A stretch of DNA of 64,000 nucleotides, from the NCBI GenBank assembly GCA_977030845.1, contig OZ365116.1, forward strand, positions 12,958,001-13,022,000, read 5' to 3'. The position numbers and the translations under genes are program-made. The notes below the pieces were generated by a model, which was not told the DNA's origin, ran no database searches, and was given only the letters and a program-made list of their open reading frames with translations. Shown piece after piece: positions 4,220 to 64,000 of the stretch (position 1 is its first letter; each line of letters opens with the position of its first letter). This stretch comes from Fimbriosthenelais zetlandica (Eukaryota).

Positions 4220-4374
4220 NNNNNNNNNNNNNNNNNNNNNNNNNNNNNNNNNNNNNNNNNNNNNNNNNNNNNNNNNNNNNNNNNNNNNNNNNNNNNNNNN
4301 NNNNNNNNNNNNNNNNNNNNNNNNNNNNNNNNNNNNNNNNNNNNNNNNNNNNNNNNNNNNNNNNNNNNNNNNNN
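4220..4374. other. Assembly gap (155 N)
   Basis: Run of N in the sequence. Confidence 0.99.
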
Positions 4375-17682: not shown

Positions 17683-19504
17683 TCCCTAGTTATTTAACAT
17701 TGCTGGAAAAGTGGAAAACTGTTACACAATTAATCGGTTTTTCACCCTAGCTGTCTCTCCCTTCCTACCCTGCACCTTTCACCCTTCCAGTTGTCAGGGT
17801 AATCACTGAGACAAACAATTTTAGTTGCCATCACGACTCACGTACACTTATGATTTTTTTTTATCTTTTCACCCAACATCAAAAGAAATGTGCCACATGG
17901 AATTACTTCCAAACTTGATCACCTTTGTGATCCGTGGCCTATAGCAGAGCAGATACTCTATCGGTTCTGATGTTTATTCTTACTATTTAGACATTAAAAT
18001 AGGTGCGACTATTCAATTAATTAGCAAGCCTAAATATATGCCGCCAAATCCTCTATATTTGCACAGAACCACTCTTTCCGGGCGTCTACTATCCTGTATG
18101 ATTAACCTTCTCTAAATATACAGGTTAAACTCTTTTTTTCATTCGAAATATATATCATGTGCAAGATTTGCAAAATGTAGAGCAGTGGGTTTGGAGTTTC
18201 TTTTTTCACCTAGTCCTTATGACTTACATACCACTGCAAATAACATGCATGCCCTTTGAAGTTACACAAGATGAATATGATTTTTTCACCTGGATTTTGG
18301 TATCCAGCTCTCGAAATCTTTTGCTTTTGTTGGCGGGGTGAGCATGGCATATTAGTGCACTTGAGGGGATTGCGGACGGGGACCTCTGTCGTTGGTGAGG
18401 TCAGGTGAGATTCAGCTCGTTATCCCAAACGGCTGAGCTGGGGGATTAAGTCAACTATTTGAAAGGATGAGGACAAACAAGTTTTGGCTTAATCATGGAG
18501 CCGATAGTGTAAGAGTCTGGTATGCCTCTTCTTTACAATGGTGGGCGCTTGAAAACTGTGTTCGTCTGACTCATCTAAGGCCTGTGAGATTTCAGTTCTC
18601 AATTCTTGTCCTGCAAGATCCGAAGAAACGGACTATAGACAACAACATATAGCTTGTTCACAGAATATTAATTCATCTCAGACTATGTTGGTTGGTTGGA
18701 GTCACGAGGTTTGGAGCTTAAAAACCCTGCTTGAAAACGACCCAAGTTTACGATATTTTTTGATATTGGCTTTTCACAGAGAAGTGCATGGACGGAGACC
18801 GTTTTTGCATTCAGTGAGCAAAATTAGGTGATCTTGGTCTGTTCCACGGCCACCCACCCACGCTACCTTTTAACATGGTCTCCTATATCTCTGCTTTTTC
18901 TCCATATTTTTTTAGGGAAGTAAATGTTCTAATGTTTAACTGACTATGGAAACCAAAAACATAGTTGGTCCTCTGATGCGAGGAGTCAGTGGAAACTCCG
19001 CTCCTTGCCTTTCCGAACTTGAAAATAATGCAGGTTAAAAAGTACATATTTGTGTCCTTGGGAGGCTAACCAATGCATAGTGCAAATTATGGGCTGTGAC
19101 ATTATATGATGAGTATAAAAATACTGTTTCATGTATTCACCACAGCTGATTCCCCCTTTCTAAAGGCAGCACACCTGTGATATGTTCCACGGCCAATGTG
19201 TAAGCAAGGAAATAATTTTTAGCAAATCACGCCACCTTTGCTAACATAAAGCAATGTGTATTGCAGTGTGAGACGAGAAGTAGAAGGTGAAGTTGACCGA
19301 CTCAGACAAGTTCATATCTGCTTTGATCTAAACATGCCTTTACATGCCTCATTTCACCTATACATCATGCTCATTTTATCATAGAAATTAAAAATTACAA
19401 ACAACATGTGGTTCACTTGGAGCTCTCCCTCTCTCTCAGAGAAAGGTGTGTTGCCATATCAGACAGCTGAGTGAAAGATACCCTACCGTGTAGTTCCCTA
19501 CTTA

Positions 19505-20616: not shown

Positions 20617-22948
20617 TTAAGCACAATATGGCAACTGTGATCAATCTGACAAAGCATGTTCTCTTACATCCATGTTCAGATGACTATAGAGGTTCGGCCA
20701 TTCACCCTAGCCCTACACAGAGCTAACTCTGAACAATGTCAATACCAATGAGATCCATGACAGAATGTTATTCACGAATTCCATTTTTTTTTACTTCAAT
20801 CCACTAATCCCGTATGTTGAAGAGCATAGGCTGCCTGTTTATGAAAGCATTGCGAGAATAGACCCCGCTTAAAAACCCAGCTAACATGTCACGGATCAGA
20901 GAAGCGTGAAGACATTAAAAACTCAAAGATCTTTTTTCAAACTTAAAGCAAATAAATATGATGTTCCATATATGCACCTTAGAGTTCTACCTTAGAGTTC
21001 TTCTTAGTTCCTGAGTGCTGCCATTCGTCAAATCTGTGTCCAAGCAGACCAGAGTAAATAGACAAGAGGAGTTTGATTTTCCTCTGTCTAACAGAGTCAC
21101 TTGCTTGTTCTGGGTCAAAGGCACTAATCCCTGCTGATCATTGCTTGCTTTTAACCTTGAGAGGAAGGTCAGGATCTCCTTCCATTAATGTACAAAGGCT
21201 GGATGGGTGTCTGGATAACCTGTATCCAAGTCAAGAGGGTCTCCAAGACAGTTCTCCATGATCTGGAGAGGGTGAAGCTTAATGCCCCTCCACAGCCACC
21301 CCACCACCTTCCCCAATCTCCCCGATCATCCCCTCTGATCCAGAAGACCTTCTCCGATGTTTGGTTGCTGTGGAAACAGGTCATACTGCCATGGCAACAG
21401 GGCTTAGTTTTCACCTAGGTGGTCCATTGTTAACTTTACCTCCTCAGATTTAAACTTTTTTTTTCTTATTTTTTTACCACCATGAGGAAGTGGGTCTAAA
21501 AATAAGGTGATATAAATAATTTGATATGAAAGTTAGAATATATTGATTAGTATTTATATCCCTTCCTTCTATTTAGATTTTAGTTAAAAGTGATGAATTT
21601 AGATTGTGCTTATAAGTGATGATATATTACTTATCTTCAGATCTTGATTTGCCGTTTTAAAGCCAAAGAAACTGGTCTGAGCCTTCCTTTTTTGGCTCAA
21701 GGCCATCACTCTAGAAAATCAATGTTAAGTTATGGGAATGCACCCCGGCAACTTTCCCAGCCGCGCTTTATATACCACTGCCACAAGTTTAAGTGTATCT
21801 ACTTCCATTCTAATCTCCCTGGGATGTGATATTTGTGATAGACTTAGTACATGAACATAAAATAGAAACCAGAATAGTAAGATGGCCGACCTTGTTCAGC
21901 CAGCAAATGTAAAATATATTACATCTCTAGTAACATACTCATATAGTCCTCGATACCGAAGGGGATTCATTCGGTGGAGGAAAATGTAGCATAAAACAAG
22001 GACAAATCAGACTGTCTGTGATCCCAATCATAGAAACTATACATTCTCTAAAATTGCTTAGCTATATACTTACCTATAGGGAAAGATCTATCAGCAAGCT
22101 TCATTGTAAAAATGGCATAAAATGAAATGTATTCCGTCAGTGCATAAAGGCAAAAACTTATATACACTAACTTTGTGTTCAAAATGCTCAGATGCATTTT
22201 AGAGATTTCATTCAGTGCCCTATATAGCAAGCATGTGGCTTGTGAATGTTTTATTTTTTACATTGTGGTTTTCTGTGATATATAGTACCATGAATTGGTT
22301 TTCTTTTCCTGAAGAATTTAGTGGTCAATTTTGCGGTTGACCGCAATCGCCCATCCTAATTGTTCCGATACATTTTTTCCAATGGTCATGGGTTTCTGTT
22401 GACAGGAATAAAAGCGCCTTAGGCACTCCTCGATATCTTTATTAGCTGTTCAACAATGTTACTTGTGGATTTACTTTACTTTACTTAGCCCATGCCTTGA
22501 CAGACTCATTTCCGTATCATCTAAATATTTTGGAATTGAATTAACTATTAACTGATACCTTTGGGAATGGATTGATTGAAAGGAAAGACAATATATGCAA
22601 AAAAGGCCCTATATATAAGGCTCTAGTATAACTATAGAAGTGTCTCATGCTATCTACTGTATACTGACAAACTTTTCTGCTGTGTTTGCACTTTTCCTCT
22701 AGTCACCCAGCCCTTCTCCCCCTATCACAATCTCCTGATAACAAGTTACAATATTGTCATTTCTACCACAGAGATTACCATGTCTGTCTTTAGGGGGAAA
22801 AGAAGAAGTCCCAATCCCCTTGAGGTCCCCCTAAACTCCCAATTTCTTACAGATTATATCAATTTTCATTGATTTACGCCAATTTCTTGATTTTAAAAGT
22901 GCAGAGGGACACTGCTGAATTGCATAAGTAAAGTATAGCTTTCTGTTA

Positions 22949-52163: not shown

Positions 52164-52322
52164 NNNNNNNNNNNNNNNNNNNNNNNNNNNNNNNNNNNNN
52201 NNNNNNNNNNNNNNNNNNNNNNNNNNNNNNNNNNNNNNNNNNNNNNNNNNNNNNNNNNNNNNNNNNNNNNNNNNNNNNNNNNNNNNNNNNNNNNNNNNNN
52301 NNNNNNNNNNNNNNNNNNNNNN
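52164..52322. other. Assembly gap (159 N)
   Basis: Run of N in the sequence. Confidence 0.99.
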
Positions 52323-54309
52323 GATATGCTAAAGGATATATCTATAGGGCCTATATATGGTATGAAATAATGAAAAAAGCAAACGCAAGGCGACACTTTA
52401 TTATGGAACCTAAAAATCATTTTATTATATTTCTTTAATAAATATGATGACCAGGTCAATTCAACATTACAAGATTTTATTGAAAGGAGGAAACATTTCT
52501 TGTGGCTCTTCTCCATGTGCACCACTGAAGGTGTGACAGAGTCGAGGCCCACCAAGTTTTTCTATTTTCAATAACACCAACTCCCCTTCATCCATCACCA
52601 TTATTCTACGTGTGTCTATAAGATCTGAAAGCTTTTTCTTTGCGCCACAACATTCAGAAAAACTCCCATGTACTGCATATACCAGTTCTTCAACTCAGAT
52701 GAATTTTACTTTACATATTTTAGAGCATATATGACCATTGACTGACAATGATATTGTGATTAATTGGAATTGCCGCCAATAGACATGATTAGGGTATATA
52801 TTCATCAGAGGGCACCACTGGTGGTATGAGTGACGTCATTGATCCCAAAATCAACAAATATTTCCTTGAAATAACTACCTAGATATTCTATATTTTTTCA
52901 TCAAATGCATAAATTTCAGAGTAAATAATTCATTTTTTTGTGTTTATAAAACACTACATGATACTAGTTTTTTCTCTTTAATGAAATATAAAATAATTAG
53001 ATTAAAACTGTGCTGATATAGGTGTAACCCAGGCACCAGTCTATAATGTTCCCACTCACTCTCACCTGGTCCCCTGCTCTCCTCAAAAACATCTCCGCAT
53101 TCCAGACTGAGGCTCAAATTTCACCTCAATCTTTCGTTCGGCGATTAATCCCCGCGGATTGTGAGGGTAAACTATTTCAGGTAAAGCTTTGGTCGGGTCA
53201 GATTTAGCGAGGAATAAATAGGCCCGTCTCTGATCTCAGGCCGAATCATATGCCCCACCGACTAAGAAATGGTTATTGTGCTTTTAAACCATAAGATAAT
53301 ATTGGTTTTATGCAAACTTCTAGATTAATAAACTCTTGATATTGGCATGCACGACCTGCGCAGGAGGTACACTATACTTTTCTTGCAGCTTGCCTTGCTT
53401 TTCTTAAATTGAAATATTCATAATAAGGCATCGTATTGCCAATTAAAATGAACATCATTTGCCATTTTGACTTTGATACATTTAATGGATTGGATGGGAG
53501 TTGTCAAGTGTTCAATCTTGGTGTAAAGATATATACATGTATTTTTTGAGGTACATGTATCACTATTTCTGTTCGGATGCAAGCCCAGTCACACATTGGC
53601 GCATCTTAGTCCCTATATAGGATCTTTATTCTATACTCATTGCTATAGGACCTAATGGCCCTAGAATGCTTCTCTATGATTATTGGTATTAAATGTCTTA
53701 AATGAATTATTACGAATCCACCCTCATACATTTTACCGCTCCTTGCTTTATATTTTTCTTCATTACATGCATGAACAAGCAAAGGTACATATTTCAGATT
53801 CCATGTTGAAACCTGATACTTCTACAATCAATAAAGATGAGAATTTATGCTAAATCAGAGGGACAATCAACTTCCTTTGAGGTCCAAATCAATATAGCTT
53901 GAATGGCCTTTTTGTTCGATAGAATATGCTGATGAAAATGATTAGTATATATACATATTTACTATTGATGTGATTATGAATGTGTCAATTATACCTATGA
54001 TTTAATAACAGGGCTGAGTTGTGCTTTGTGCCGGGGTATCAAATGTTGTAGAGTGTCATATTAATTAAGTTGTCAGGCCACAAATTGTACCTCTTTATAT
54101 AAGTGGAGGGGTCTCAGTTATGATTATGCCTGACATAAATCCATGTCACCCTTGGTTGGCCTCACAAAACTCGCACCGGGGGTAATGACAGTGTGTTAAA
54201 GTCTGTTAAATCTTCATGAAATGTATAATGCAAAAGGAATCGGTCTATAATCATTCCTGGTGGCTCATCTTTTCTCGTTTTTTTCATCAGCTTTTATTCC
54301 CCTTTCTCC

Positions 54310-54570
54310 TCCCACTTTCCTTTCATCTTTCTCCCTCCATCTTTCCTTTCCATGTTCCTCCCTCCATGATCTTTCCTTTCTATCTTCCTCCCTCCATCTT
54401 TCCTTTCTATCTTCCTCCCTCCATCCTTCCTTTCCATCTTCCTCCCTCCATGATCTTTCCTTTCTATCTTCCTCCGTCCATCTTTCCTTTCTATCTTCCT
54501 CCCTCCATCTTTCCTTTCTATCTTCCTCCCTCCATCTTTCCTTTCTGTCATCCATCCTTTCTTCCATTCC
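54310..54570 (+). repeat. Polypyrimidine minisatellite (27-30 bp unit CCTCCCTCCATCTTTCCTTTCTATCTT)
   Basis: About 8 units. It explains the four overlapping ORFs 54216-54748. Confidence 0.92.
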
Positions 54571-54647
54571 TCCCTCTTGTCTTTCTCTTCTCTGCATGTT
54601 TTCTTTCTCATCGATGTCCTTGCCATTCCATCCACCTTTCCCTCTAA

Positions 54648-54852
54648 TGCCGGGCCCACACAGAGGCGATTTCCCCAAGCGATGCAGAGCGATATTATAT
54701 ATTTCTAGTCACACCCAATGCTTGTTATTCCATCAGTGGTTAGTTTAAATAGGTTTAAAGTACTGTTAACATTTCAAGCATTGGTTGTGACTAGAAATAT
54801 ACTATCGCTCTGCATCTCGTGGGGGGCAAATCGCCTCTGTGTGTGCCTGGTA
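54648..54852 (+). mobile_element. MITE family B, copy 6
   Basis: TAA|TGCCGGGCCCACACAGAGGCGATTT ... AAATCGCCTCTGTGTGTGCCTGGTA|TAA. Confidence 0.92.
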
Positions 54853-57305: not shown

Positions 57306-57869
57306 GGAATGTACTGCAGTAACCCAACAATTAGATACCACAGTTGGGGGCTGCACCAACTATGCTGCCTTGAGAAACAGATTGATACATATAGAAACAA
57401 GCTGAGACAATAAAGAGGAGAATGCTGCAGTGGCTTTAAAGACAAGGTTGTTAGGTACACTCAGATAATGCACTAAAGCCTCCAATACAGATGAGCCCTA
57501 TTATTACATTTTTCTCATTCATTGCTTTCATATAAAGATATTGCTTTGGAATTATCCCCATCAATATCTTATATAAAATTAATAATTCAACTGAAAACTA
57601 TGACATTATCTCTTGTATAGTTTCACCAGTTGAGCTTGTGTGATTTTTTTGATATCTAATATTTTCCTGTAACAAGCCAGCTTAAAGGCAACGGCCCATG
57701 AGATTGTAAAAACGCTATTCTCCTCACTTAAATTATGTGTTATATGTTACTCTTTGATCGTGTAAATTATTTCCCGAATCCCTTGTACCCCGCACCCGTG
57801 AGAGGCTCGTGAAAATAGATAGCATGACAATTAGGTCACCGTGACCTAGTTTTGGGGTCAAGAGGCCTG

Positions 57870-57877
57870 TGACGTCA
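57870..57877. promoter_or_regulatory. CRE palindrome TGACGTCA 88 bp upstream of the transposase ATG
   Basis: GTGACGTCAC within a CpG-rich leader. Confidence 0.45.
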
Positions 57878-57964
57878 CACGCACAACACCTGGCGCTCTG
57901 AGCAGCTCGCGCGGCTAGGTAGCTTGCATTTTTCTACTTGCAAAAACCCTTATTTCGTATTACA

Positions 57965-58327
57965 ATGGTGCGCTGTATTGTTTTTGGATGTTCCAATACA
58001 TCGGGAGAGAAGATAAGTTTACATGAGTGGCCCAAATCAAAGGATAACAAACGGTCAAGAGCTTGGATCAAGTTTGTTCAGCGGACGAGGGCCGACTGGA
58101 AGAAACCAGCGACCTCTGGACGCACTTTTATTTGTTCCGATCATTTCACAACGGATTCTTTTAGCAACTATATGAAATTCGCAAAGGGCTTTGACAAAAA
58201 ACTATTGCTCCGACATGATGCCATCCCCACTATCTATCCAGAAGGCACCTGCAGATTATTAAATGATGCATCCACATCGAGAGCACCAAGGGAGGCCTTC
58301 CTAAAACGGGAGATGAGCAGGGACAGG
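57965..58327 (+). CDS. Transposase exon 1: THAP zinc finger
   Basis: MVRCIVFGCSN...AWIKFV...ICSDHF...DAIPTIY; donor GTATGT at 58328. Confidence 0.92.
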
Positions 58328-61300
58328 GTATGTGAAGAGTTTCCTTATTATAACTAGATCTAAGTTATAAATTAAAGACAAAAGCTTTGGGTCTAAGCCT
58401 ATATAAGGTCATTTTTCCTTTCTACTTTTAAAATCCTAATAAAGTTCGATCTATTATTAATCAAATTCCCATAAATTAATGGAACTGGAAGTTTTGAACC
58501 ACAATTCTAGGCCTAAATTAGCCTAAAGTAATTTAACCGTTCGCCTGCTGACACTGAAAGTGTAACTAAGTGTCACTAGTGACAAGTAGACTTAGTGTCA
58601 GATGGGTAGGCCATGGGCGACACACACTGGGAATTCTCTTTACTAGATACTAGACCTAGTACTTAGCCTAGTTAAAATACTGCAGGCTTTTATTATCAAT
58701 TATTATAATTGATTATTCTGGGGAGCAGAGTCACTCAGGGTCTCTCGGGCTTAGAGTGAGCATGGACAGTGAAGTAGGCTCGGCCCTTGCCAAGTAGACC
58801 GGGACTGGAGTTACGAGACTGATAACCTCTGATAGGCCCCTATAATAATGGCAGTTTATAATAAGTTTCTACCAGCGGAAGAACAGAATATTTGATTTCT
58901 TTGGTAAAATTGTTACTTCAAGCCACTGTGTCACGCTTCCATGAACATGATTGACCATATGTTTGTTATGCGATCCTATGCACCATGTCTGAGTCAGTGA
59001 GGAACTCAGACATACTCATAGTCTAGATAGAGTAGGGTAGCCTAGCCCTAGATATGTGTGTGAGTGATAGCTTGATATTTCAATCATTGTCCGTATAGAT
59101 AGGTTTCAAGTATGAAATCTATAATGTAGGCATCCAAAGTCCAGTTGTATCTATCACTCACTGAATCTTACCTTAAAACGGAGCAATGATCCGACATTTC
59201 ACAATCAAACTTCCGCACCGAGTGTGGACAGCTGTATGCGGACGAGCCGTTCTCGAGGAATGAGGTCACATGCTGGAAAATCCCTACAGATTTCTTCAGA
59301 TTATAAGCAGAAATACAGCTTTCTTCTGGATCAAACCTGGATGCATTGACGTAGTATCCAAGTTGTTTTCACTTCTTATAGGCATGTCCAACTCTACTAG
59401 TAGTAGGCCTAATATCCTTGCTCTCTCTACTTCTATGCTCTGAGCACATGTCATGGCCAGATAGGGCTATGACAACACTGGAAGTGACGTAGTAGGCATA
59501 GGCATATAGGTGGCGCTAGCATCAGCCTTTCCCGCCCATAACCTGTTTCCTATGTAAAATACATTTTTAATTAAAACGGGTTAAAATAAAGAGGTATACC
59601 TACCGACCCACTAAAAAAGGTATAATTGTCTTTTTATAGTTGGAAAATGCTTCGAAGGCTGACACCGAGGAAGAAAGTGAGATGCCCAATCAAGATACTC
59701 AACCTTCAGCTTCAGATGAAGATCCAGAACCAAGAGCTATGATCATTGATCAACATCCAGCCACTTGTGACAAAGGTATCGTCACCAAGCCTGAGACCAG
59801 GTCCATTGGGACTATGACAGATCAGTCTCTTTTCCCAATACCCCATACACGGAAAGGTAGGCCTAAGCATAAGTTAATTTCATTGTGGATCTAGTAGGCC
59901 TAGGTGGTTGTTGTTGTGGGGCTTAATTGGGGGGCAGGGTGGGTGGGGGCTTTTAGGTCTAACCCCGAACCAAATATTGGCATTTCATTTAATCATTTAA
60001 ATATAAATGAAGCACGATTTGCAGGATTAAATTATTATTAAGCTATTATTAATACAATTCCTATTTTATTCTTTTTAGTGAAAACTCAAACAACGGCCGT
60101 AAACACGTCTGATAAGGCTGTTCAGGTAAAGAGGCGACCCTCAACCCCATGCCCTCCAAGAGCTTCCACTCCTGTTGAGTACTCCAGTAGTGAGGATGAT
60201 CTAGACACCACTGATAGCGATATGACATGGGAACCCTGTGATGTATCCGGGGATGATGATATGTCTGTGATTAGGTAAGTAGGCCTAGTATGTACACAGA
60301 ATAATATCTAGGTAATATCTTTTGCGGATTGGTGTTTGTGGGGGTGGAGGGGGAGGAGGAAAACTAAAAACCCTACATATATTTGCAAGTATTGTGAAAA
60401 TGTATTTTCTCATATTACAGTGACGAAGGGCAATGGGATGAACCAAAATACATAGTCTTTAAATCAAAGCTATGGGAACTCTTTCTACGGTGCCCAATAT
60501 GTAACATGTGTTGCGAAATACAACACTACTGTAAGGGCACAATGCTCCACGTCACCCAAAGCTGTACCGACTGCAAGTACACCAGGAGATGGGATAGCCA
60601 ACCATCTGTCAAAGATATCCCATTGGGCAACCTCCTGGTGTCTGCCTCTCTCACCTTCAGTGGCTTATCCCCCACGAAATCCATCCGTTTCATGGAGTCA
60701 ATGGGACTCGCTACCATCTCGCTAACCACATACAAGTCACACACCAGCCTCTATGTGCAGCCAACTGTATGGGATTTGTGGAAGGAGGAGCAGGAATCTA
60801 TGGTGAGGAGCCTGCAGGAGCTGCAAGGTCCACTGCAATGTGCTGGGGACGGTAGGGCTGATAGCCCAGGGCACTGCGCCAAGTATGGCACGTACACGTT
60901 CGTGGAGACCCGCATTAATAAAGTTCTAGATATTGAACTTGTCCAGGTAATAATAATATGCTTAACAGCTAACTAGTGTAAAGCATAAATTAGACTTTCG
61001 CGTATATTTTTTAATACATATAGGGCCTAGACATAAGGAAAAAATGTTAGGCCTATAATGTTATTTAAATACATTTTTCAGTGTGGTCGGATTTAAATTT
61101 CAATTTTCCGACGTCCATGTTATAGAAATGATAATAAATGTTTGAAATGTATGCTTGTCACCACAGAGCAACGAAGTTGGGAACAGTGCGCGAATGGAAA
61201 AGGAGGGTCTGGAGAGGTGTCTCTCCTACATTGATGATAGCGGATTAGAGCTTGGGACGCTGGTGACAGATCGTCATCCTTCCATCCAGAAAATGATGAG

Positions 61301-63264
61301 AGAAGAGCATGGGAATGTTAAACATCACTACGACATCTGGCATGTGGCTAAAGGTGAGAAAATTGTTCGATAAAGGGCTCGATAAATAATGTCCGGGACA
61401 TTTTCCTGCTGGACTACCAAGTCTAACCAACATAATCAATTGTTCAATAATAGTTAATAGCTCCATCCGACTACTACAATTCGCTAAAATATTTCGAGCC
61501 ATGAGCCTACTTCTTTAATATATAGAACGATCATTTTGAAATGTTTTGTTTTCATTTAAAGGTTTCTCCAAGAAAGCTGAGGCTTTGGCCAAACAACGAG
61601 AGTGCGAAGACATAAGGCCATGGATAAAAAGCTGCTCTAACCACATGTACTGGTGTGCCGCCTCTACCCCAGATGGAGATCAAGATGTCATAGAGGAAAA
61701 GTGGTTATCTATGGCAGACCATATCCAGGACATCCATCACAGATGTGCCCATGAACCCCTAGATGATGAGGCCAGGAGGAGAAAGAAGTGGCTCAAACCA
61801 AGTAAGAATTAGCTTGTCCACCATAGTACTCGCCCACATTTACAATATATAATACGAATCTAATCTTAATCTCCAGTCATTAATTAATTTGTTGAATTTT
61901 TTTTGCATAGATCCACTCTCATAAATGCTACATATTTTTGAACTTCACATATGTACTTCACATGTTCCCCTGTGGCTGGTCAATCATGACATTGTACATC
62001 CATAGGCAAAAGCATTCTTATACAACACCCTGGTCATTTGTAAAAAGAAAAAAAAATTATACCTTTTCGTCTTCAGACACCAAGGCCTACGAGAAGTTTC
62101 TGGATCTTATCCAAAATACCAGACTGTGTAATGATGTCAGAAAGCTGTCACCGAATATTCAAACATCTTCAGTGGAAGCAGTCCACAGTTTGATGCTCCA
62201 TTGGACACCAAAGCACACGGCATTTGGATACAAAGGCATGCTTGTCAGGTAGAAAAAATATATTTATAATATAATATCATTCAATCACAAACATTATTGG
62301 TAACATTTACTGGCAGATGTTTACATATTGCTTCAACAAAGTAATTAAATTTTTCTGTAAATTTCTGATTTTTAGTCGTTTAAATTGATATTCACTCAGG
62401 CACTTCATCACTTGTCTCCACTTCAACGAGAACAGTGGCAAGGATTTCAAAATGGATGCCGAGGGAAACCAAGTGTTCCGAATCATCTTCCCCAAAGCCA
62501 AGAAGGGGGATTTCACATTACGTAAAGTAAAGTGTGAATCAACATACGGTAATTGGACATTTCTTTTATTGGTATTTACATGCTTATCATTTTTCCCACA
62601 CTGTACAAATGAATTTGCGAGAAAATATTATGTGAAAATGTTATTACTATGTACATCTTCTATAACATCACTATTGAACTATCGCGCATAAGGCCACTGT
62701 CAGGAATTAGAATTTTGTGAGGAAGTAAAACATGAAAGCCTAAATTAGAAATATTCGAAATTAAGTAACATAAACCTACGAGGACTTAAATCCTTAAAAT
62801 GATAGTCTAAACCACATCTCTAGAGATATCCAATATACTAAATCCCTACCCGGGAATTCCCTCGGGGAAAATACAGGTCTCGGCTGCCTGACAGGGATGG
62901 TTTGTGTTAGTGTCATAATTGTTTTTTTCAAATATACTGTACCGTACTAGATTTAGAGGGAAAAAGTCTATATTACAAATCAAACCTGGTAATATCTTGT
63001 ACAATCACAATAAAGGAAATGAATTAGAAACTTCTCGCCAGTGTATATTGCCTAAAAACTATCAATTAAATTATTTTTCTCTTTTCAGATTATGTCCAAA
63101 AACTCCTCGGTAGACTGATACAGCTAGTAGTACCAGAACCATCACTCTACCAAAACAGCTGGGAGAGTTCTGTGACTGAGCCCCCATTCCTAGCTTCTAG
63201 TTGTGAACGTCCCAACAAATCCAGCGCAGTAGAAAGGTTTCAGAATGTGACACGCTACCAGTAA
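57965..63264 (+). CDS. Kolobok transposase (THAP domain + DDE core), 9 exons, 741 aa
   Basis: Exons 57965-58327, 59640-59856, 60079-60274, 60421-60946, 61167-61353, 61562-61801, 62077-62248, 62400-62548 and 63089-63264 all have GT-AG introns. Phases 0,1,2,0,1,1,2,1 are consistent, the total is 2226 nt, and there is no internal stop. THAP: C-x4-C, W, CSDHF, AIPTI. Core: GDGRADSPGH, LVTDRH, YDIWH, QTSSVE, LHFNEN. Confidence 0.92.
59640..59856 (+). CDS. Transposase exon 2 (acidic linker)
   Basis: Acceptor TTTTATAG, LENASKADTEEESE..., donor GTAGGC; phases fit the neighbouring exons. Confidence 0.8.
60079..60274 (+). CDS. Transposase exon 3 (linker)
   Basis: Acceptor CTTTTTAG, (V)KTQTT...DDDMSVI, donor GTAAGT. 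Confidence 0.85.
60421..60946 (+). CDS. Transposase exon 4 (CxxC..CxxC region, first catalytic D in GDGRADSPGH)
   Basis: Acceptor TTACAG, DEGQWDEPKYIVF...RCPIC...CTDC...GDGRADSPGHCAKYGTYT...LVQ, donor GTAATA. Confidence 0.93.
61167..61353 (+). CDS. Transposase exon 5 (LVTDRH, YDIWH)
   Basis: SNEVGNSARMEKEGL...HVAK, donor GTGAGA. Confidence 0.92.
61562..61801 (+). CDS. Transposase exon 6
   Basis: FSKKAEAL...NHMYWC...HIQDIHHRCAH...WLKP, donor GTAAGA. Confidence 0.9.
62077..62248 (+). CDS. Transposase exon 7 (putative catalytic E in QTSSVE)
   Basis: Acceptor CTTCAG, TKAYEKF...LSPNIQTSSVEAVHS...PKHTAF, donor GTAGAA. Confidence 0.9.
62400..62548 (+). CDS. Transposase exon 8
   Basis: Acceptor ACTCAG, HFITCLHFNEN...FPKAKKG...STY, donor GTAATT. 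Confidence 0.88.
63089..63264 (+). CDS. Transposase exon 9 (terminal)
   Basis: Acceptor CTTTTCAG, YVQKLL...PPFLASSCERPNK...TRYQ* (TAA at 63262-64). Confidence 0.85.
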
Positions 63265-63315
63265 TATGTAAAGTACATGTATCCCCGTGTTCCCCTCTAT
63301 GTGAAACGTTCCTAA

Positions 63316-63743
63316 TGCCAGACTTTTTTTATTGTTTGGTTCGCGGACCCGCAGAATTTTTTTTTGAAAAATAGAAATTTTTTTTTTTATTTTTTCTACC
63401 ATTAGCGGATCTGCCGGCGCTTGATCCAGGCAAAAAAAAATATTTTTTTTTAGATTCCGACCTCCCAAGTTTAAAAATGTTTATAAATATCAACTTTAAA
63501 AATGTTTATAAATATCATGGACCTATACATCAATGGCTTTTAGCAGTTTATATATATACTTTTAATGAAGATTTAAAAAAATTATTATAAATTTATATTT
63601 TTAATTAAAAAAATTCTCTTTTTTCTCCGCCGACATTATTTTTTGAAAGATGACTATTGTGACTCAGAATTTTTTTTCCGCCCGCCGACGAAAATTTTAG
63701 AACCATTTTTGTCTGAGAACCAAACAATCAAAAAAGTCTGGCC
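63316..63743. mobile_element. Harbinger-like MITE (428 bp) nested in the Kolobok element
   Basis: TAA|TGCCAGACTTTTTTTATTGTTTGGTTC ... GAACCAAACAATCAAAAAAGTCTGGCC|TAA, a 27-bp TIR with 2 mismatches and a TAA TSD. Confidence 0.85.
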
Positions 63744-63830
63744 TAACCAAAGAATTACTTGCCTGGAAAATAACTTTTGTCACTAAAATGTCCACCCTGT
63801 TAATATTAGAAGACTGTATTTTTATAACAA

Positions 63831-63990
63831 TTAATCTAACTTGGGGTATTTAAAACCAACATGGCTATCGGAAGGAAACTCTGCTCTAATCCTTGTAACA
63901 GCACATGCCGGCAGAGGAATTCTGATGCTCTTTCCCACGTATCCGTAGCACCACCTTACAAGTTGACGATACGATGTGTAGCGATAGCGG
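63831..63990 (-). CDS. KolX (P2RX7 C-terminal/nanor-like) terminal exon; upstream exons lie outside the window
   Basis: After the acceptor ATTTACAG it reads RYRYTSYRQLVRWCYGYVGKSIRIPLPACAVTRIRAEFPSDSHVGFKYPKLD*. This matches the YR..AYRQ...W..G.LG...R..LP.C.V..IR..FP...GF pattern of KolX/P2RX7-like proteins. It is below the ORF-track cutoff. Confidence 0.9.
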
Positions 63991-64000
63991 CTGTAAATAT

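Follow-up and report, generated by a model that had tools for sequence, protein, structure and literature searches.

At the right edge of the 64-kb window (the whole stretch of DNA analysed here, ending at base 64000) lies an intact THAP-DDE transposase gene, which raises the question of what kind of element it belongs to and whether that element could still move. By the definition of Kojima and Bao (2022, PMC9587614), Kol0 elements combine a DDE transposase with KolX, have RR termini and duplicate TTAA. With a probability of about 0.8, the region is the left ~6.3 kb, or left two-thirds, of an autonomous Kolobok-superfamily DNA transposon of this KolX-carrying Kol0 lineage. The assignment was made because the transposase motifs, the KolX exon, the left TTAA/AGG and the layout of a Ptychodera flava element all agree. 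The proposed element would run from its TTAA target site through an AGG terminus and a 280-bp CpG-rich leader into the nine-exon transposase gene, followed by a convergent KolX gene (Table 1).

Gene model of the transposase

Every GT/AG combination within 4 nt of the junctions given by the sequence-only reading was searched, and exactly one open model was obtained. It consists of nine GT-AG exons on the + strand (57965-63264), with canonical dinucleotides at all 16 splice sites and intron phases of 0, 1, 2, 0, 1, 1, 2 and 1, which join into an uninterrupted frame of 2226 nt (741 codons and a TAA stop). Exons 1 and 4-9 are backed by collinear homology to full-length proteins, with which the transposase aligns end to end. 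Residues 122-258, encoded by exons 2 and 3, form a variable linker modelled from the open frame, the splice sites and the restoration of frame only; no homology support was found for exon 2, and the end of exon 3 coincides with an intron position also seen in the Diadema and Ptychodera homologues. The claim that nine canonical exons encode a 741-aa protein with THAP, CxxC/CxxC and DDE parts was thus upheld by the sole open model, the THAP match and the motifs described below. The gene had also been called intron-rich, which its nine exons bear out, but this is not special to the present copy, as at least five intron positions are common to sea-urchin and acorn-worm homologues. Because the frame is intact, the copy is either recent or else has been retained by selection.

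Table 1. Features of the element within the window (positions counted from the first base of the window)
Feature	Position	Strand	Basis or remark
TTAA, presumed left target-site duplication	57682..57685		read directly
Presumed left terminus AGGCAACGGCCCATGAG, beginning AGG	57686..57702	+	unique in window at <=3 mismatches
Leader/putative promoter region, 280 bp, CpG o/e 1.03	57686..57964	+	promoter function predicted
Perfect IR3 palindrome AGGTCAccgTGACCT	57833-57847	+	in leader; nuclear-receptor-type
Perfect CRE TGACGTCA	57870-57877	+	in leader; putative function
Exon 1, THAP DNA-binding domain (C4, C9, C57, H60, AIPTIY box)	57965..58327	+	Pfam THAP E 1.3e-16; motifs
Exon 2, acidic variable linker	59640..59856	+	open frame and GT-AG only
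Exon 3, variable linker	60079..60274	+	open frame and GT-AG; only marginal similarity
Exon 4, CxxC/CxxC zinc module and first catalytic Asp (GDGRADSPGH, D402)	60421..60946	+	phmmer; conserved columns
Exon 5, second catalytic Asp (TDRH, D469) and DIWH motif	61167..61353	+	motifs; weak MULE/Mutator match
Exon 6, NH(M)YW motif and H2CH zinc motif (H550, H555, C558, H560), short 2-residue loop	61562..61801	+	conserved columns
Exon 7, catalytic Glu (QTSSVEAVHS, E610)	62077..62248	+	motifs; conserved columns
Exon 8, conserved LHFNEN / FPKAKKG block	62400..62548	+	133 homologue matches
Exon 9, conserved C-terminus (PPFLASSxERPxK...RF), TAA stop	63089..63264	+	family consensus ends at same C-terminal motif
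Nested MITE-like insertion, 428 bp, 32-nt TIRs (91%), TAA at both sides	63316..63743		between convergent stop codons
KolX last exon, P2X7 cytoplasmic-ballast homologue, ...YRQLVRWCYGYVGKSIRIPLPACAVTRIRAEFP...FKY and stop	63831..63990	-	Pfam P2RX7_C E 2.3e-6

Domains and conserved residues of the transposase

The transposase carries a zinc module (C283xxC286 and C307xxC310), a C521xxH524 pair and a catalytic triad of D402 (GDGRADSPG), D469 (TDRH) and E610 (EAVHS). When it is measured against the columns of 25 full-length homologues, all 56 invariant residues are present, as are 40 of the 41 that are nearly invariant, and in phmmer searches exon 4 gave 3215 matches, 124 of them at E<=1e-30. The core fits the published Kolobok_1_BF1p and Kolobok_1_XT1p rows (Data S5, PMC9587614) motif by motif when compared by eye on the published text, the motifs in common being GDGRxDSPGHCAKY, TDRH, YDxWHxAK, WIK..NH, EKWLS..DHI, CAH, KWLxP and E..HS. 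This agreement, the triad, C521xxH524 and the invariant columns place the protein among Kolobok-superfamily transposases, and, with the THAP domain and the KolX partner, support the family assignment of the sequence-only reading. Of the two further hallmarks of Kolobok, the N-terminal THAP domain (C2CH, P/W/F and an AVPTIF box, which here reads AIPTIY) is present at E 1.3e-16 and the H2CH residues H550, H555, C558 and H560 are conserved around a short loop. In 135 of 138 homologues the loop is longer by 7 residues. A deletion lesion was considered and rejected; the short loop is a sub-lineage trait, because it is common to three of the 138 homologues, including the nearest relative, P0157.

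No solved structure matched the transposase core by sequence when a profile of 25 homologues was used. In the AlphaFold model (pLDDT 84.7) of P0151, the closest relative with a full core, the invariant residue aligned to D402 lies on strand 1, that aligned to D469 just past core strand 4, and that aligned to E610 in a later helix. In Foldseek the best matches of this model were the IS256-family transposase of ISCth4, the Drosophila P element transposase and Hermes (E 3.5e-5 to 4e-3), with which it is predicted to have in common an RNase-H-like DDE fold and a helical insertion domain; the TM-scores are low, however (0.25-0.49), at sequence identities of 7-12%. Database and fold queries consisted of exon pieces and homologues. 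Recognition of the ends of the element would fall to the THAP domain and the CxxC/CxxC zinc module, and the DDE core would cut these ends and then paste them into TTAA by a putative cut-and-paste chemistry.

Presumed left end and leader

Kolobok elements make TTAA duplications (PMC9587614), and AG/AGG termini are the rule for Kolobok and T2-MITEs (PMC6004289). The terminal inverted repeats of Kolobok take the form 5'-RR ... YY-3'. The TTAA/AGG claimed as the left end of this element is present at 57682, 280 bp upstream of the transposase ATG, and the distance from AGG to ATG resembles that in the P. flava element. The + strand of the window holds 14 copies of TTAAAGG, so that one would fall by chance in the 300 bp before the ATG with a probability of ~0.06, and TTAAAGG alone is weak evidence. 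An inverted partner of the left terminus was not found within the window at <=3 mismatches, and the right end falls past base 64000, where it would be expected as ...CTCATGGGCCGTTGCCT followed by TTAA. Full-length XKol elements of Xenopus measure 7.8-12.2 kb (PMC6004289), and the present element is therefore expected to continue well past base 64000. The CRE-bearing leader was likewise confirmed, with a perfect TGACGTCA at 57870 that may act as a CRE. A 21-mer of the left terminus gave one match in metagenome contigs, which was rejected as chance because it falls where a bacterial AAA ATPase gene encodes its Walker-A motif.

The KolX exon and a nested insertion

A KolX gene converges on the transposase gene, and the window holds its last 52 codons only, its upstream exons falling past base 64000. 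The exon is open up to its stop, as had been claimed, its P2RX7_C match covers HMM positions 143-185 of 192, and it fits the KolX alignment in PMC9587614 (Fig. S6). The second gene that distinguishes the Kol0 lineage is thus represented by these 52 codons. KolX, a zinc protein with the P2X7-ballast fold, is likely the ancestor of the P2X7 receptor ballast domain; any part that it plays in transposition is putative. The MITE-like insertion between the two convergent genes may disturb the 3' ends of both: AATAAA is missing from the + strand after the transposase stop, and the only AATAAA signals available to the minus-strand KolX gene lie inside the insertion.

Relatives in other genomes

Genome annotations of fish, echinoderms, hemichordates, amphioxus and bivalves already list hundreds of full-length THAP-DDE homologues. 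Two of these are informative for the layout of the element. The P. flava homologue (P0174, locus L002), with TTAA/AGG 270 bp before its ATG, belongs to an element of 14.4 kb that is flanked by TTAA and has a 15-bp TIR (AGG...), and the homologue of the sea urchin Diadema antillarum (P0168, locus L003) is followed downstream by a convergent P2RX7_C gene, the same gene pair as in the window. Both have introns in common with the window copy after residues about 121, 258, 434, 497, 577 and 634. In contrast, they are only 34-43% identical to it and belong to another clade of the tree, and no non-coding sequence or repeats in common with either locus were found. A GCCCATG motif occurs in the left ends of both the window element and the P. 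flava element, in the latter outside the TIR.

The nearest relatives, P0151, P0153, P0156 and P0157 (metagenome-derived, loci L004 and L005), fall in the same clade at 44-51% core identity, and P0157 has the short H2CH loop of the window transposase. Their cores are intronless, a single open frame covering residues 212/266-741, whereas five introns interrupt this part of the window copy. The window transposase stands on a long solitary branch, its nearest relative being 50% identical; the exact product of the exon-4 ORF had no record in public assemblies, and the window's own transposase was absent from two homologue lists in which it was expected to rank.

With the Kol0 elements Kolobok-1_XT, Kolobok-1_BF and Kolobok-1_Aqu (Kapitonov and Jurka; PMC9587614) the window element has in common two genes, THAP, H2CH and the core motifs, as well as a presumed TTAA target and a presumed purine-purine terminus. 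It differs from these references as a separate family whose nearest database relative is ~50% identical over 400 aa, in its shorter H2CH loop, and in being represented by its left part only within the window. Judged by its sequence, the element is a distinct family within the already known Kol0-lineage Kolobok type.

Alternative readings

It is highly improbable that the transposase comes from outside Kolobok, from one of the other superfamilies with THAP domains or TTAA targets (P element/THAP9, ISL2EU or piggyBac). THAP domains are found in P and ISL2EU transposases too, and the P element transposase ranked second among the fold matches, but the core carries the motifs seen in the Kolobok-1_BF and Kolobok-1_XT rows as published. 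P element/THAP9 membership was rejected, the 25-homologue profile aligning with P transposase over THAP only (E 0.0058, query positions 1-137) and the resemblance in fold being remote (TM 0.25-0.31). The partner gene is KolX and not a YqaJ/lambda exonuclease. In common with Kolobok, piggyBac has TTAA target specificity and, in a few of its families, a KolX-like gene (PMC9587614). It has another transposase family, however, and was rejected after a Pfam scan of the nine exons (E<=1) returned no piggyBac transposase family, the core being Kolobok-like. Its termini also differ, with CCC in piggyBac and AGG at the presumed left terminus here.

Granted a Kol0-lineage Kolobok, the copy may still be immobile despite its intact transposase, with a right TIR or upstream KolX that is truncated or mutated, or with 3' processing disabled by the MITE. 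This is possible, with the odds somewhat against it. The window ends within KolX, and the MITE lies between the stops with AATAAA placed as described above, whereas the fully conserved 2226-nt frame and the complete set of splice dinucleotides would speak against long neutral decay nearby. A host-retained, domesticated gene resembling D1-D7 XKol of Xenopus, selected for a DNA-binding or regulatory role and no longer mobile, is unlikely. Kolobok transposases have been domesticated repeatedly in Xenopus (PMC6004289), and such a history would suit the retention of all invariant residues, the CpG-island-like leader with its perfect nuclear-receptor-type and CRE sites, the long branch without a near relative, and the nested MITE, which implies some residence time. 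Neither a second copy of the element nor an empty insertion site was found within the 64-kb window, and the lack of a second copy would also be in keeping with domestication. Against it, TTAA/AGG keeps the distance to the ATG that is seen in the bona fide, TIR-bounded P. flava element, the KolX partner is still adjacent, convergent and open, and neither the catalytic triad nor the H2CH motif is damaged. In the Xenopus study, active and domesticated genes were told apart by copy numbers, the presence of both TIRs, synteny and dN/dS (PMC6004289).

Value as an experimental system

The boldest version of the preferred reading, a Kol0-lineage transposon, would have the copy complete and currently mobile, KolX a required cofactor, and the transposase promoter responsive to hormones and cAMP by way of two perfect sites in the leader, AGGTCAnnnTGACCT and TGACGTCA. 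We regard this combination as distinctly unlikely. If the copy were mobile and KolX needed, the locus would offer a naturally occurring pair of genes with TTAA specificity from which a functional Kolobok could be reconstituted for the first time; we know of no Kolobok transposase that has been reconstituted. Only the transposase half of the element can be vouched for from the window.

The suggestion that this is the best experimental candidate was overstated, given the hundreds of annotated full-length homologues and the full-length, TTAA-flanked Kolobok copies reported in Xenopus tropicalis in 2018 (Hikosaka et al., PMC6004289). Like the window element, the Xenopus XKol elements have DDE, THAP and H2CH motifs, and their AG termini are flanked by TTAA, as is presumed for the left end here (PMC6004289). 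The locus is thus not unique as a starting clone, many full-length homologues being annotated in other animals. A full-text literature search found no Kolobok excision assay, no solved structure matches the core by sequence, and an intact transposase beside KolX is therefore a reasonable clone from which to start.

Structure of the transposase gene

The gene model was rebuilt by combining every GT donor and AG acceptor no more than 4 nt from each proposed junction, and a single combination left an open frame. Its nine exons total 2226 nt (741 codons plus TAA), with canonical splice dinucleotides at 16/16 sites, intron phases of 0,1,2,0,1,1,2,1 and intron lengths of 146-540 nt, except for intron 1 (1312 nt). 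The uninterrupted nine-exon, 741-aa transposase put forward in the sequence-only reading was thus recovered at the same length. By alignment, the protein is collinear with full-length proteins in the database, starting at residue 3-4 and ending at 731-741, and homology backs exon 1 and each of exons 4-9. Homology support for exons 2 and 3, which encode an acidic linker of variable sequence (residues 122-258), was looked for and not found; these exons are based on open frames, canonical sites and joint restoration of the frame between exons 1 and 4.

Features of the element and of its nearest relatives (window positions unless a locus is named)
Feature	Position	Strand	Basis or content
Presumed left end TTAA|AGGCAACGGCCCATGAG	57682-57702	+	read from sequence
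Perfect CRE TGACGTCA	57870	+	leader
Exon 1	57965-58327	+	GT-AG model; THAP domain
Exon 2	59640-59856	+	GT-AG model; open frame
Exon 3	60079-60274	+	GT-AG model; open frame
Exon 4	60421-60946	+	GT-AG model; homology
Exon 5	61167-61353	+	GT-AG model; homology
Exon 6	61562-61801	+	GT-AG model; homology
Exon 7	62077-62248	+	GT-AG model; homology
Exon 8	62400-62548	+	GT-AG model; homology
Exon 9	63089-63264	+	GT-AG model; homology
MITE-like insertion, 428 bp	63316-63743		between convergent transposase and KolX stop codons
KolX last exon	AG acceptor 63991-63992 to stop 63831-63833	-	encodes ...YRQLVRWCYGYVGKSIRIPLPACAVTRIRAEFPSDSHVGFKYPKLD
Intron-less catalytic cores of nearest relatives	L004:4386-6113; L005:2106-3992

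The THAP, CxxC/CxxC and DDE content claimed for the spliced protein was present in full. Exon 1 matched Pfam THAP (E 1.3e-16), with an AIPTIY box as well as C4, C9, C57 and H60; C283/C286 and C307/C310 make up the CxxC/CxxC pair, and the catalytic motifs are GDGRADSPG (D402), TDRH (D469) and EAVHS (E610). When aligned with 25 full-length homologues, the protein retained 56/56 invariant columns and 40/41 columns conserved at 90% or more, the sole exception being a conservative I to L change. Its H2CH loop, from the histidines to the cysteine (residues 550-560, 61562-61801), has 2 residues against the usual 8-10. A lesion was considered and rejected, as the same loop was found in 3/138 homologues (P0135, P0157 and P0241), among them the nearest relative, P0157 (50.8% identity). 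Being common to these proteins, the short loop is a trait rather than damage and may mark a sub-lineage.

Searches of solved structures matched THAP domains alone, with no sequence match to the transposase core. An AlphaFold model was considered for the homologue P0151 (46% identical to the window protein, residues 205-731), made from 40 sequences, with a mean pLDDT of 84.7 and a pTM of 0.80. The first invariant Asp is placed on a strand and the second just past a subsequent one, while the Glu belongs to a helix, with about 140 mostly helical residues separating the second Asp from the Glu. The top Foldseek PDB matches were the IS256-family ISCth4 transposase (E 3.5e-5) and the P element transposase (8e-4), followed by weaker matches to Hermes and retroviral integrase cores. 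The predicted fold lends support to a cut-and-paste mechanism of the RNase-H-like type, of which the chemistry is inferred.

Assignment to Kolobok

A phmmer search of 1.8 billion representatives with the exon-4 peptide returned 3215 matches, including 124 at E<=1e-30. With two of the nearest matches as seeds, word-indexed searches revealed a very large family marked THAP (PF05485) and "Mutator-like transposase" (PF20700), whose members come from teleosts, sea urchins, starfish, acorn worms, amphioxus, bivalves, a nemertean and a sponge. Each member so retrieved is labelled "uncharacterized". Full-length homologues are numerous in public genomes, and the suggestion that this copy is the best experimental candidate was for that reason overstated.

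Kolobok elements duplicate TTAA and have RR/YY termini, and the Kol0 lineage (type Kolobok-1_XT) is defined by a DDD/E transposase together with KolX, a homologue of the P2X7 C-terminal ballast domain (Kojima and Bao 2022, PMC9587614). The usual transposase motifs are DDE, THAP and H2CH, and full-length Xenopus copies measure 7.8-12.2 kb, with AG termini and TTAA (Hikosaka et al. 2018, PMC6004289). In the core alignment of PMC9587614 (Data S5), Kolobok_1_XT1p and Kolobok_1_BF1p have a series of blocks in common with the window protein, in identical order: GDGRxDSPGHCAKY, ME, TDRH, YDxWHxAK, WIK..NH, EKWLS..DHI, CAH, KWLxP and E..H(S/N). The minus-strand exon matches the KolX alignment of that paper (Fig. 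S6) and Pfam P2RX7_C (E 2.3e-6), and it is open to its stop, so that the convergent, intact KolX last exon also stands. All protein-level hallmarks of Kolobok are thus present, and a presumed end with TTAA and AGG is seen on the only visible side. The family assignment made from sequence was right: the element is a Kolobok of the Kol0 lineage with KolX, a kind already described.

Probable left end, layout and introns

The TTAA|AGG of the presumed left end and the CRE-bearing leader were both found as described. The distance from TTAA|AGG to the ATG is 280 bp, and this leader is CpG-island-like (o/e 1.03 vs 0.40-0.57 in the surrounding flank, introns and exons). It holds a perfect IR3 palindrome, AGGTCAccgTGACCT, of the oestrogen-response-type nuclear-receptor consensus, which could alternatively be a transposase-binding site; allowing one mismatch yields no further match across the 64 kb (0.11 expected). 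At 57833-57877 the order is IR3 palindrome, GGGTCA half-site and CRE.

The homologous gene of Ptychodera flava (locus L002) begins 270 bp downstream of TTAA|AGGTCTGGTGAAATG, and an inverted copy of these 15 nt precedes another TTAA at a distance of 14.4 kb; we estimate well under 0.05 such pairs by chance in that scan. The spacing in P. flava, so close to that in the window, is the best available support, by analogy, for 57686 as the probable true left end, and by the same layout the window element would be expected to continue for several kb past base 64000. The P. flava element (L002:9728-24143, CM083789.1; TTAA-flanked, with the 15 nt as TIR) sits within a gene whose annotation includes a CARD domain, and it holds segments resembling the KolX tail on the minus strand (18805-18879) and on the plus strand (22091-22225). 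At the Diadema antillarum locus (L003), a 246-aa P2RX7_C gene lies downstream of the homologous THAP gene and converges on it.

Introns after residues ~121, 258, 434, 497, 577 and 634 occupy positions also used in the Diadema gene, the Ptychodera gene or both, and the intron-rich structure is therefore ancestral rather than peculiar to the window copy. While the window copy, Diadema and Ptychodera have five or six introns in common, the nearest relatives, on metagenome contigs L004 and L005, have a single continuous frame for residues 212/266-741, which suggests intron loss, or possibly retro-copying, within Kol0. Maximum-likelihood analysis put the window protein alone on a long branch (1.29 changes per site) within a well-supported clade (98/98) of intron-less metagenome sequences and fish proteins, and the Diadema, Lytechinus and P. 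flava (P0174) sequences fall apart from it.

Possibly a recent copy or a domesticated gene

A frame of this length, with every splice dinucleotide and invariant residue in place, would be lost beyond about 1% neutral divergence, and we infer that the window copy is either recent or under selection. Within the 64-kb window neither a second copy nor an empty site was found, and the left terminus had no inverted partner there; look-up found no record of the exact ORF product, and the protein was absent from two homologue lists in which it was expected to rank.

Selection could mean that the gene has been exapted by the host, as is frequent for Kolobok in Xenopus (PMC6004289). The CpG-island-like leader, its perfect palindrome and CRE, and the solitary branch of the protein all leave room for domestication. 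The TTAA|AGG end is still kept and an open KolX exon adjoins the gene, both of which speak for a transposon copy rather than a gene exapted by the host.

Nested insertion and surroundings

The MITE-like insertion has TAA on either side and 32-nt TIRs (GCCAGACTTTTTTTATTGTTTGGTTC..., 91%), in which it resembles PIF/Harbinger; no further copy was found within the window. Its presence shows that the locus has been in place for long enough to receive an insertion, and the 3' ends of the transposase and KolX genes may be affected by it.

Upstream of the element (1-57681) no convincing protein-coding ORF was found, and all stop-to-stop frames of at least 85 aa look non-coding or repeat-derived; the surroundings are a gene-poor stretch or a very long intron. 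Runs of N at 4220-4374 (155 nt) and 52164-52322 (159 nt) are assembly gaps or masked stretches. A low-complexity tandem repeat at 54210-54750, with long open frames on both strands (PPSIFPFYL... / RKERWREEDRKE...), is probably a minisatellite and not a gene.
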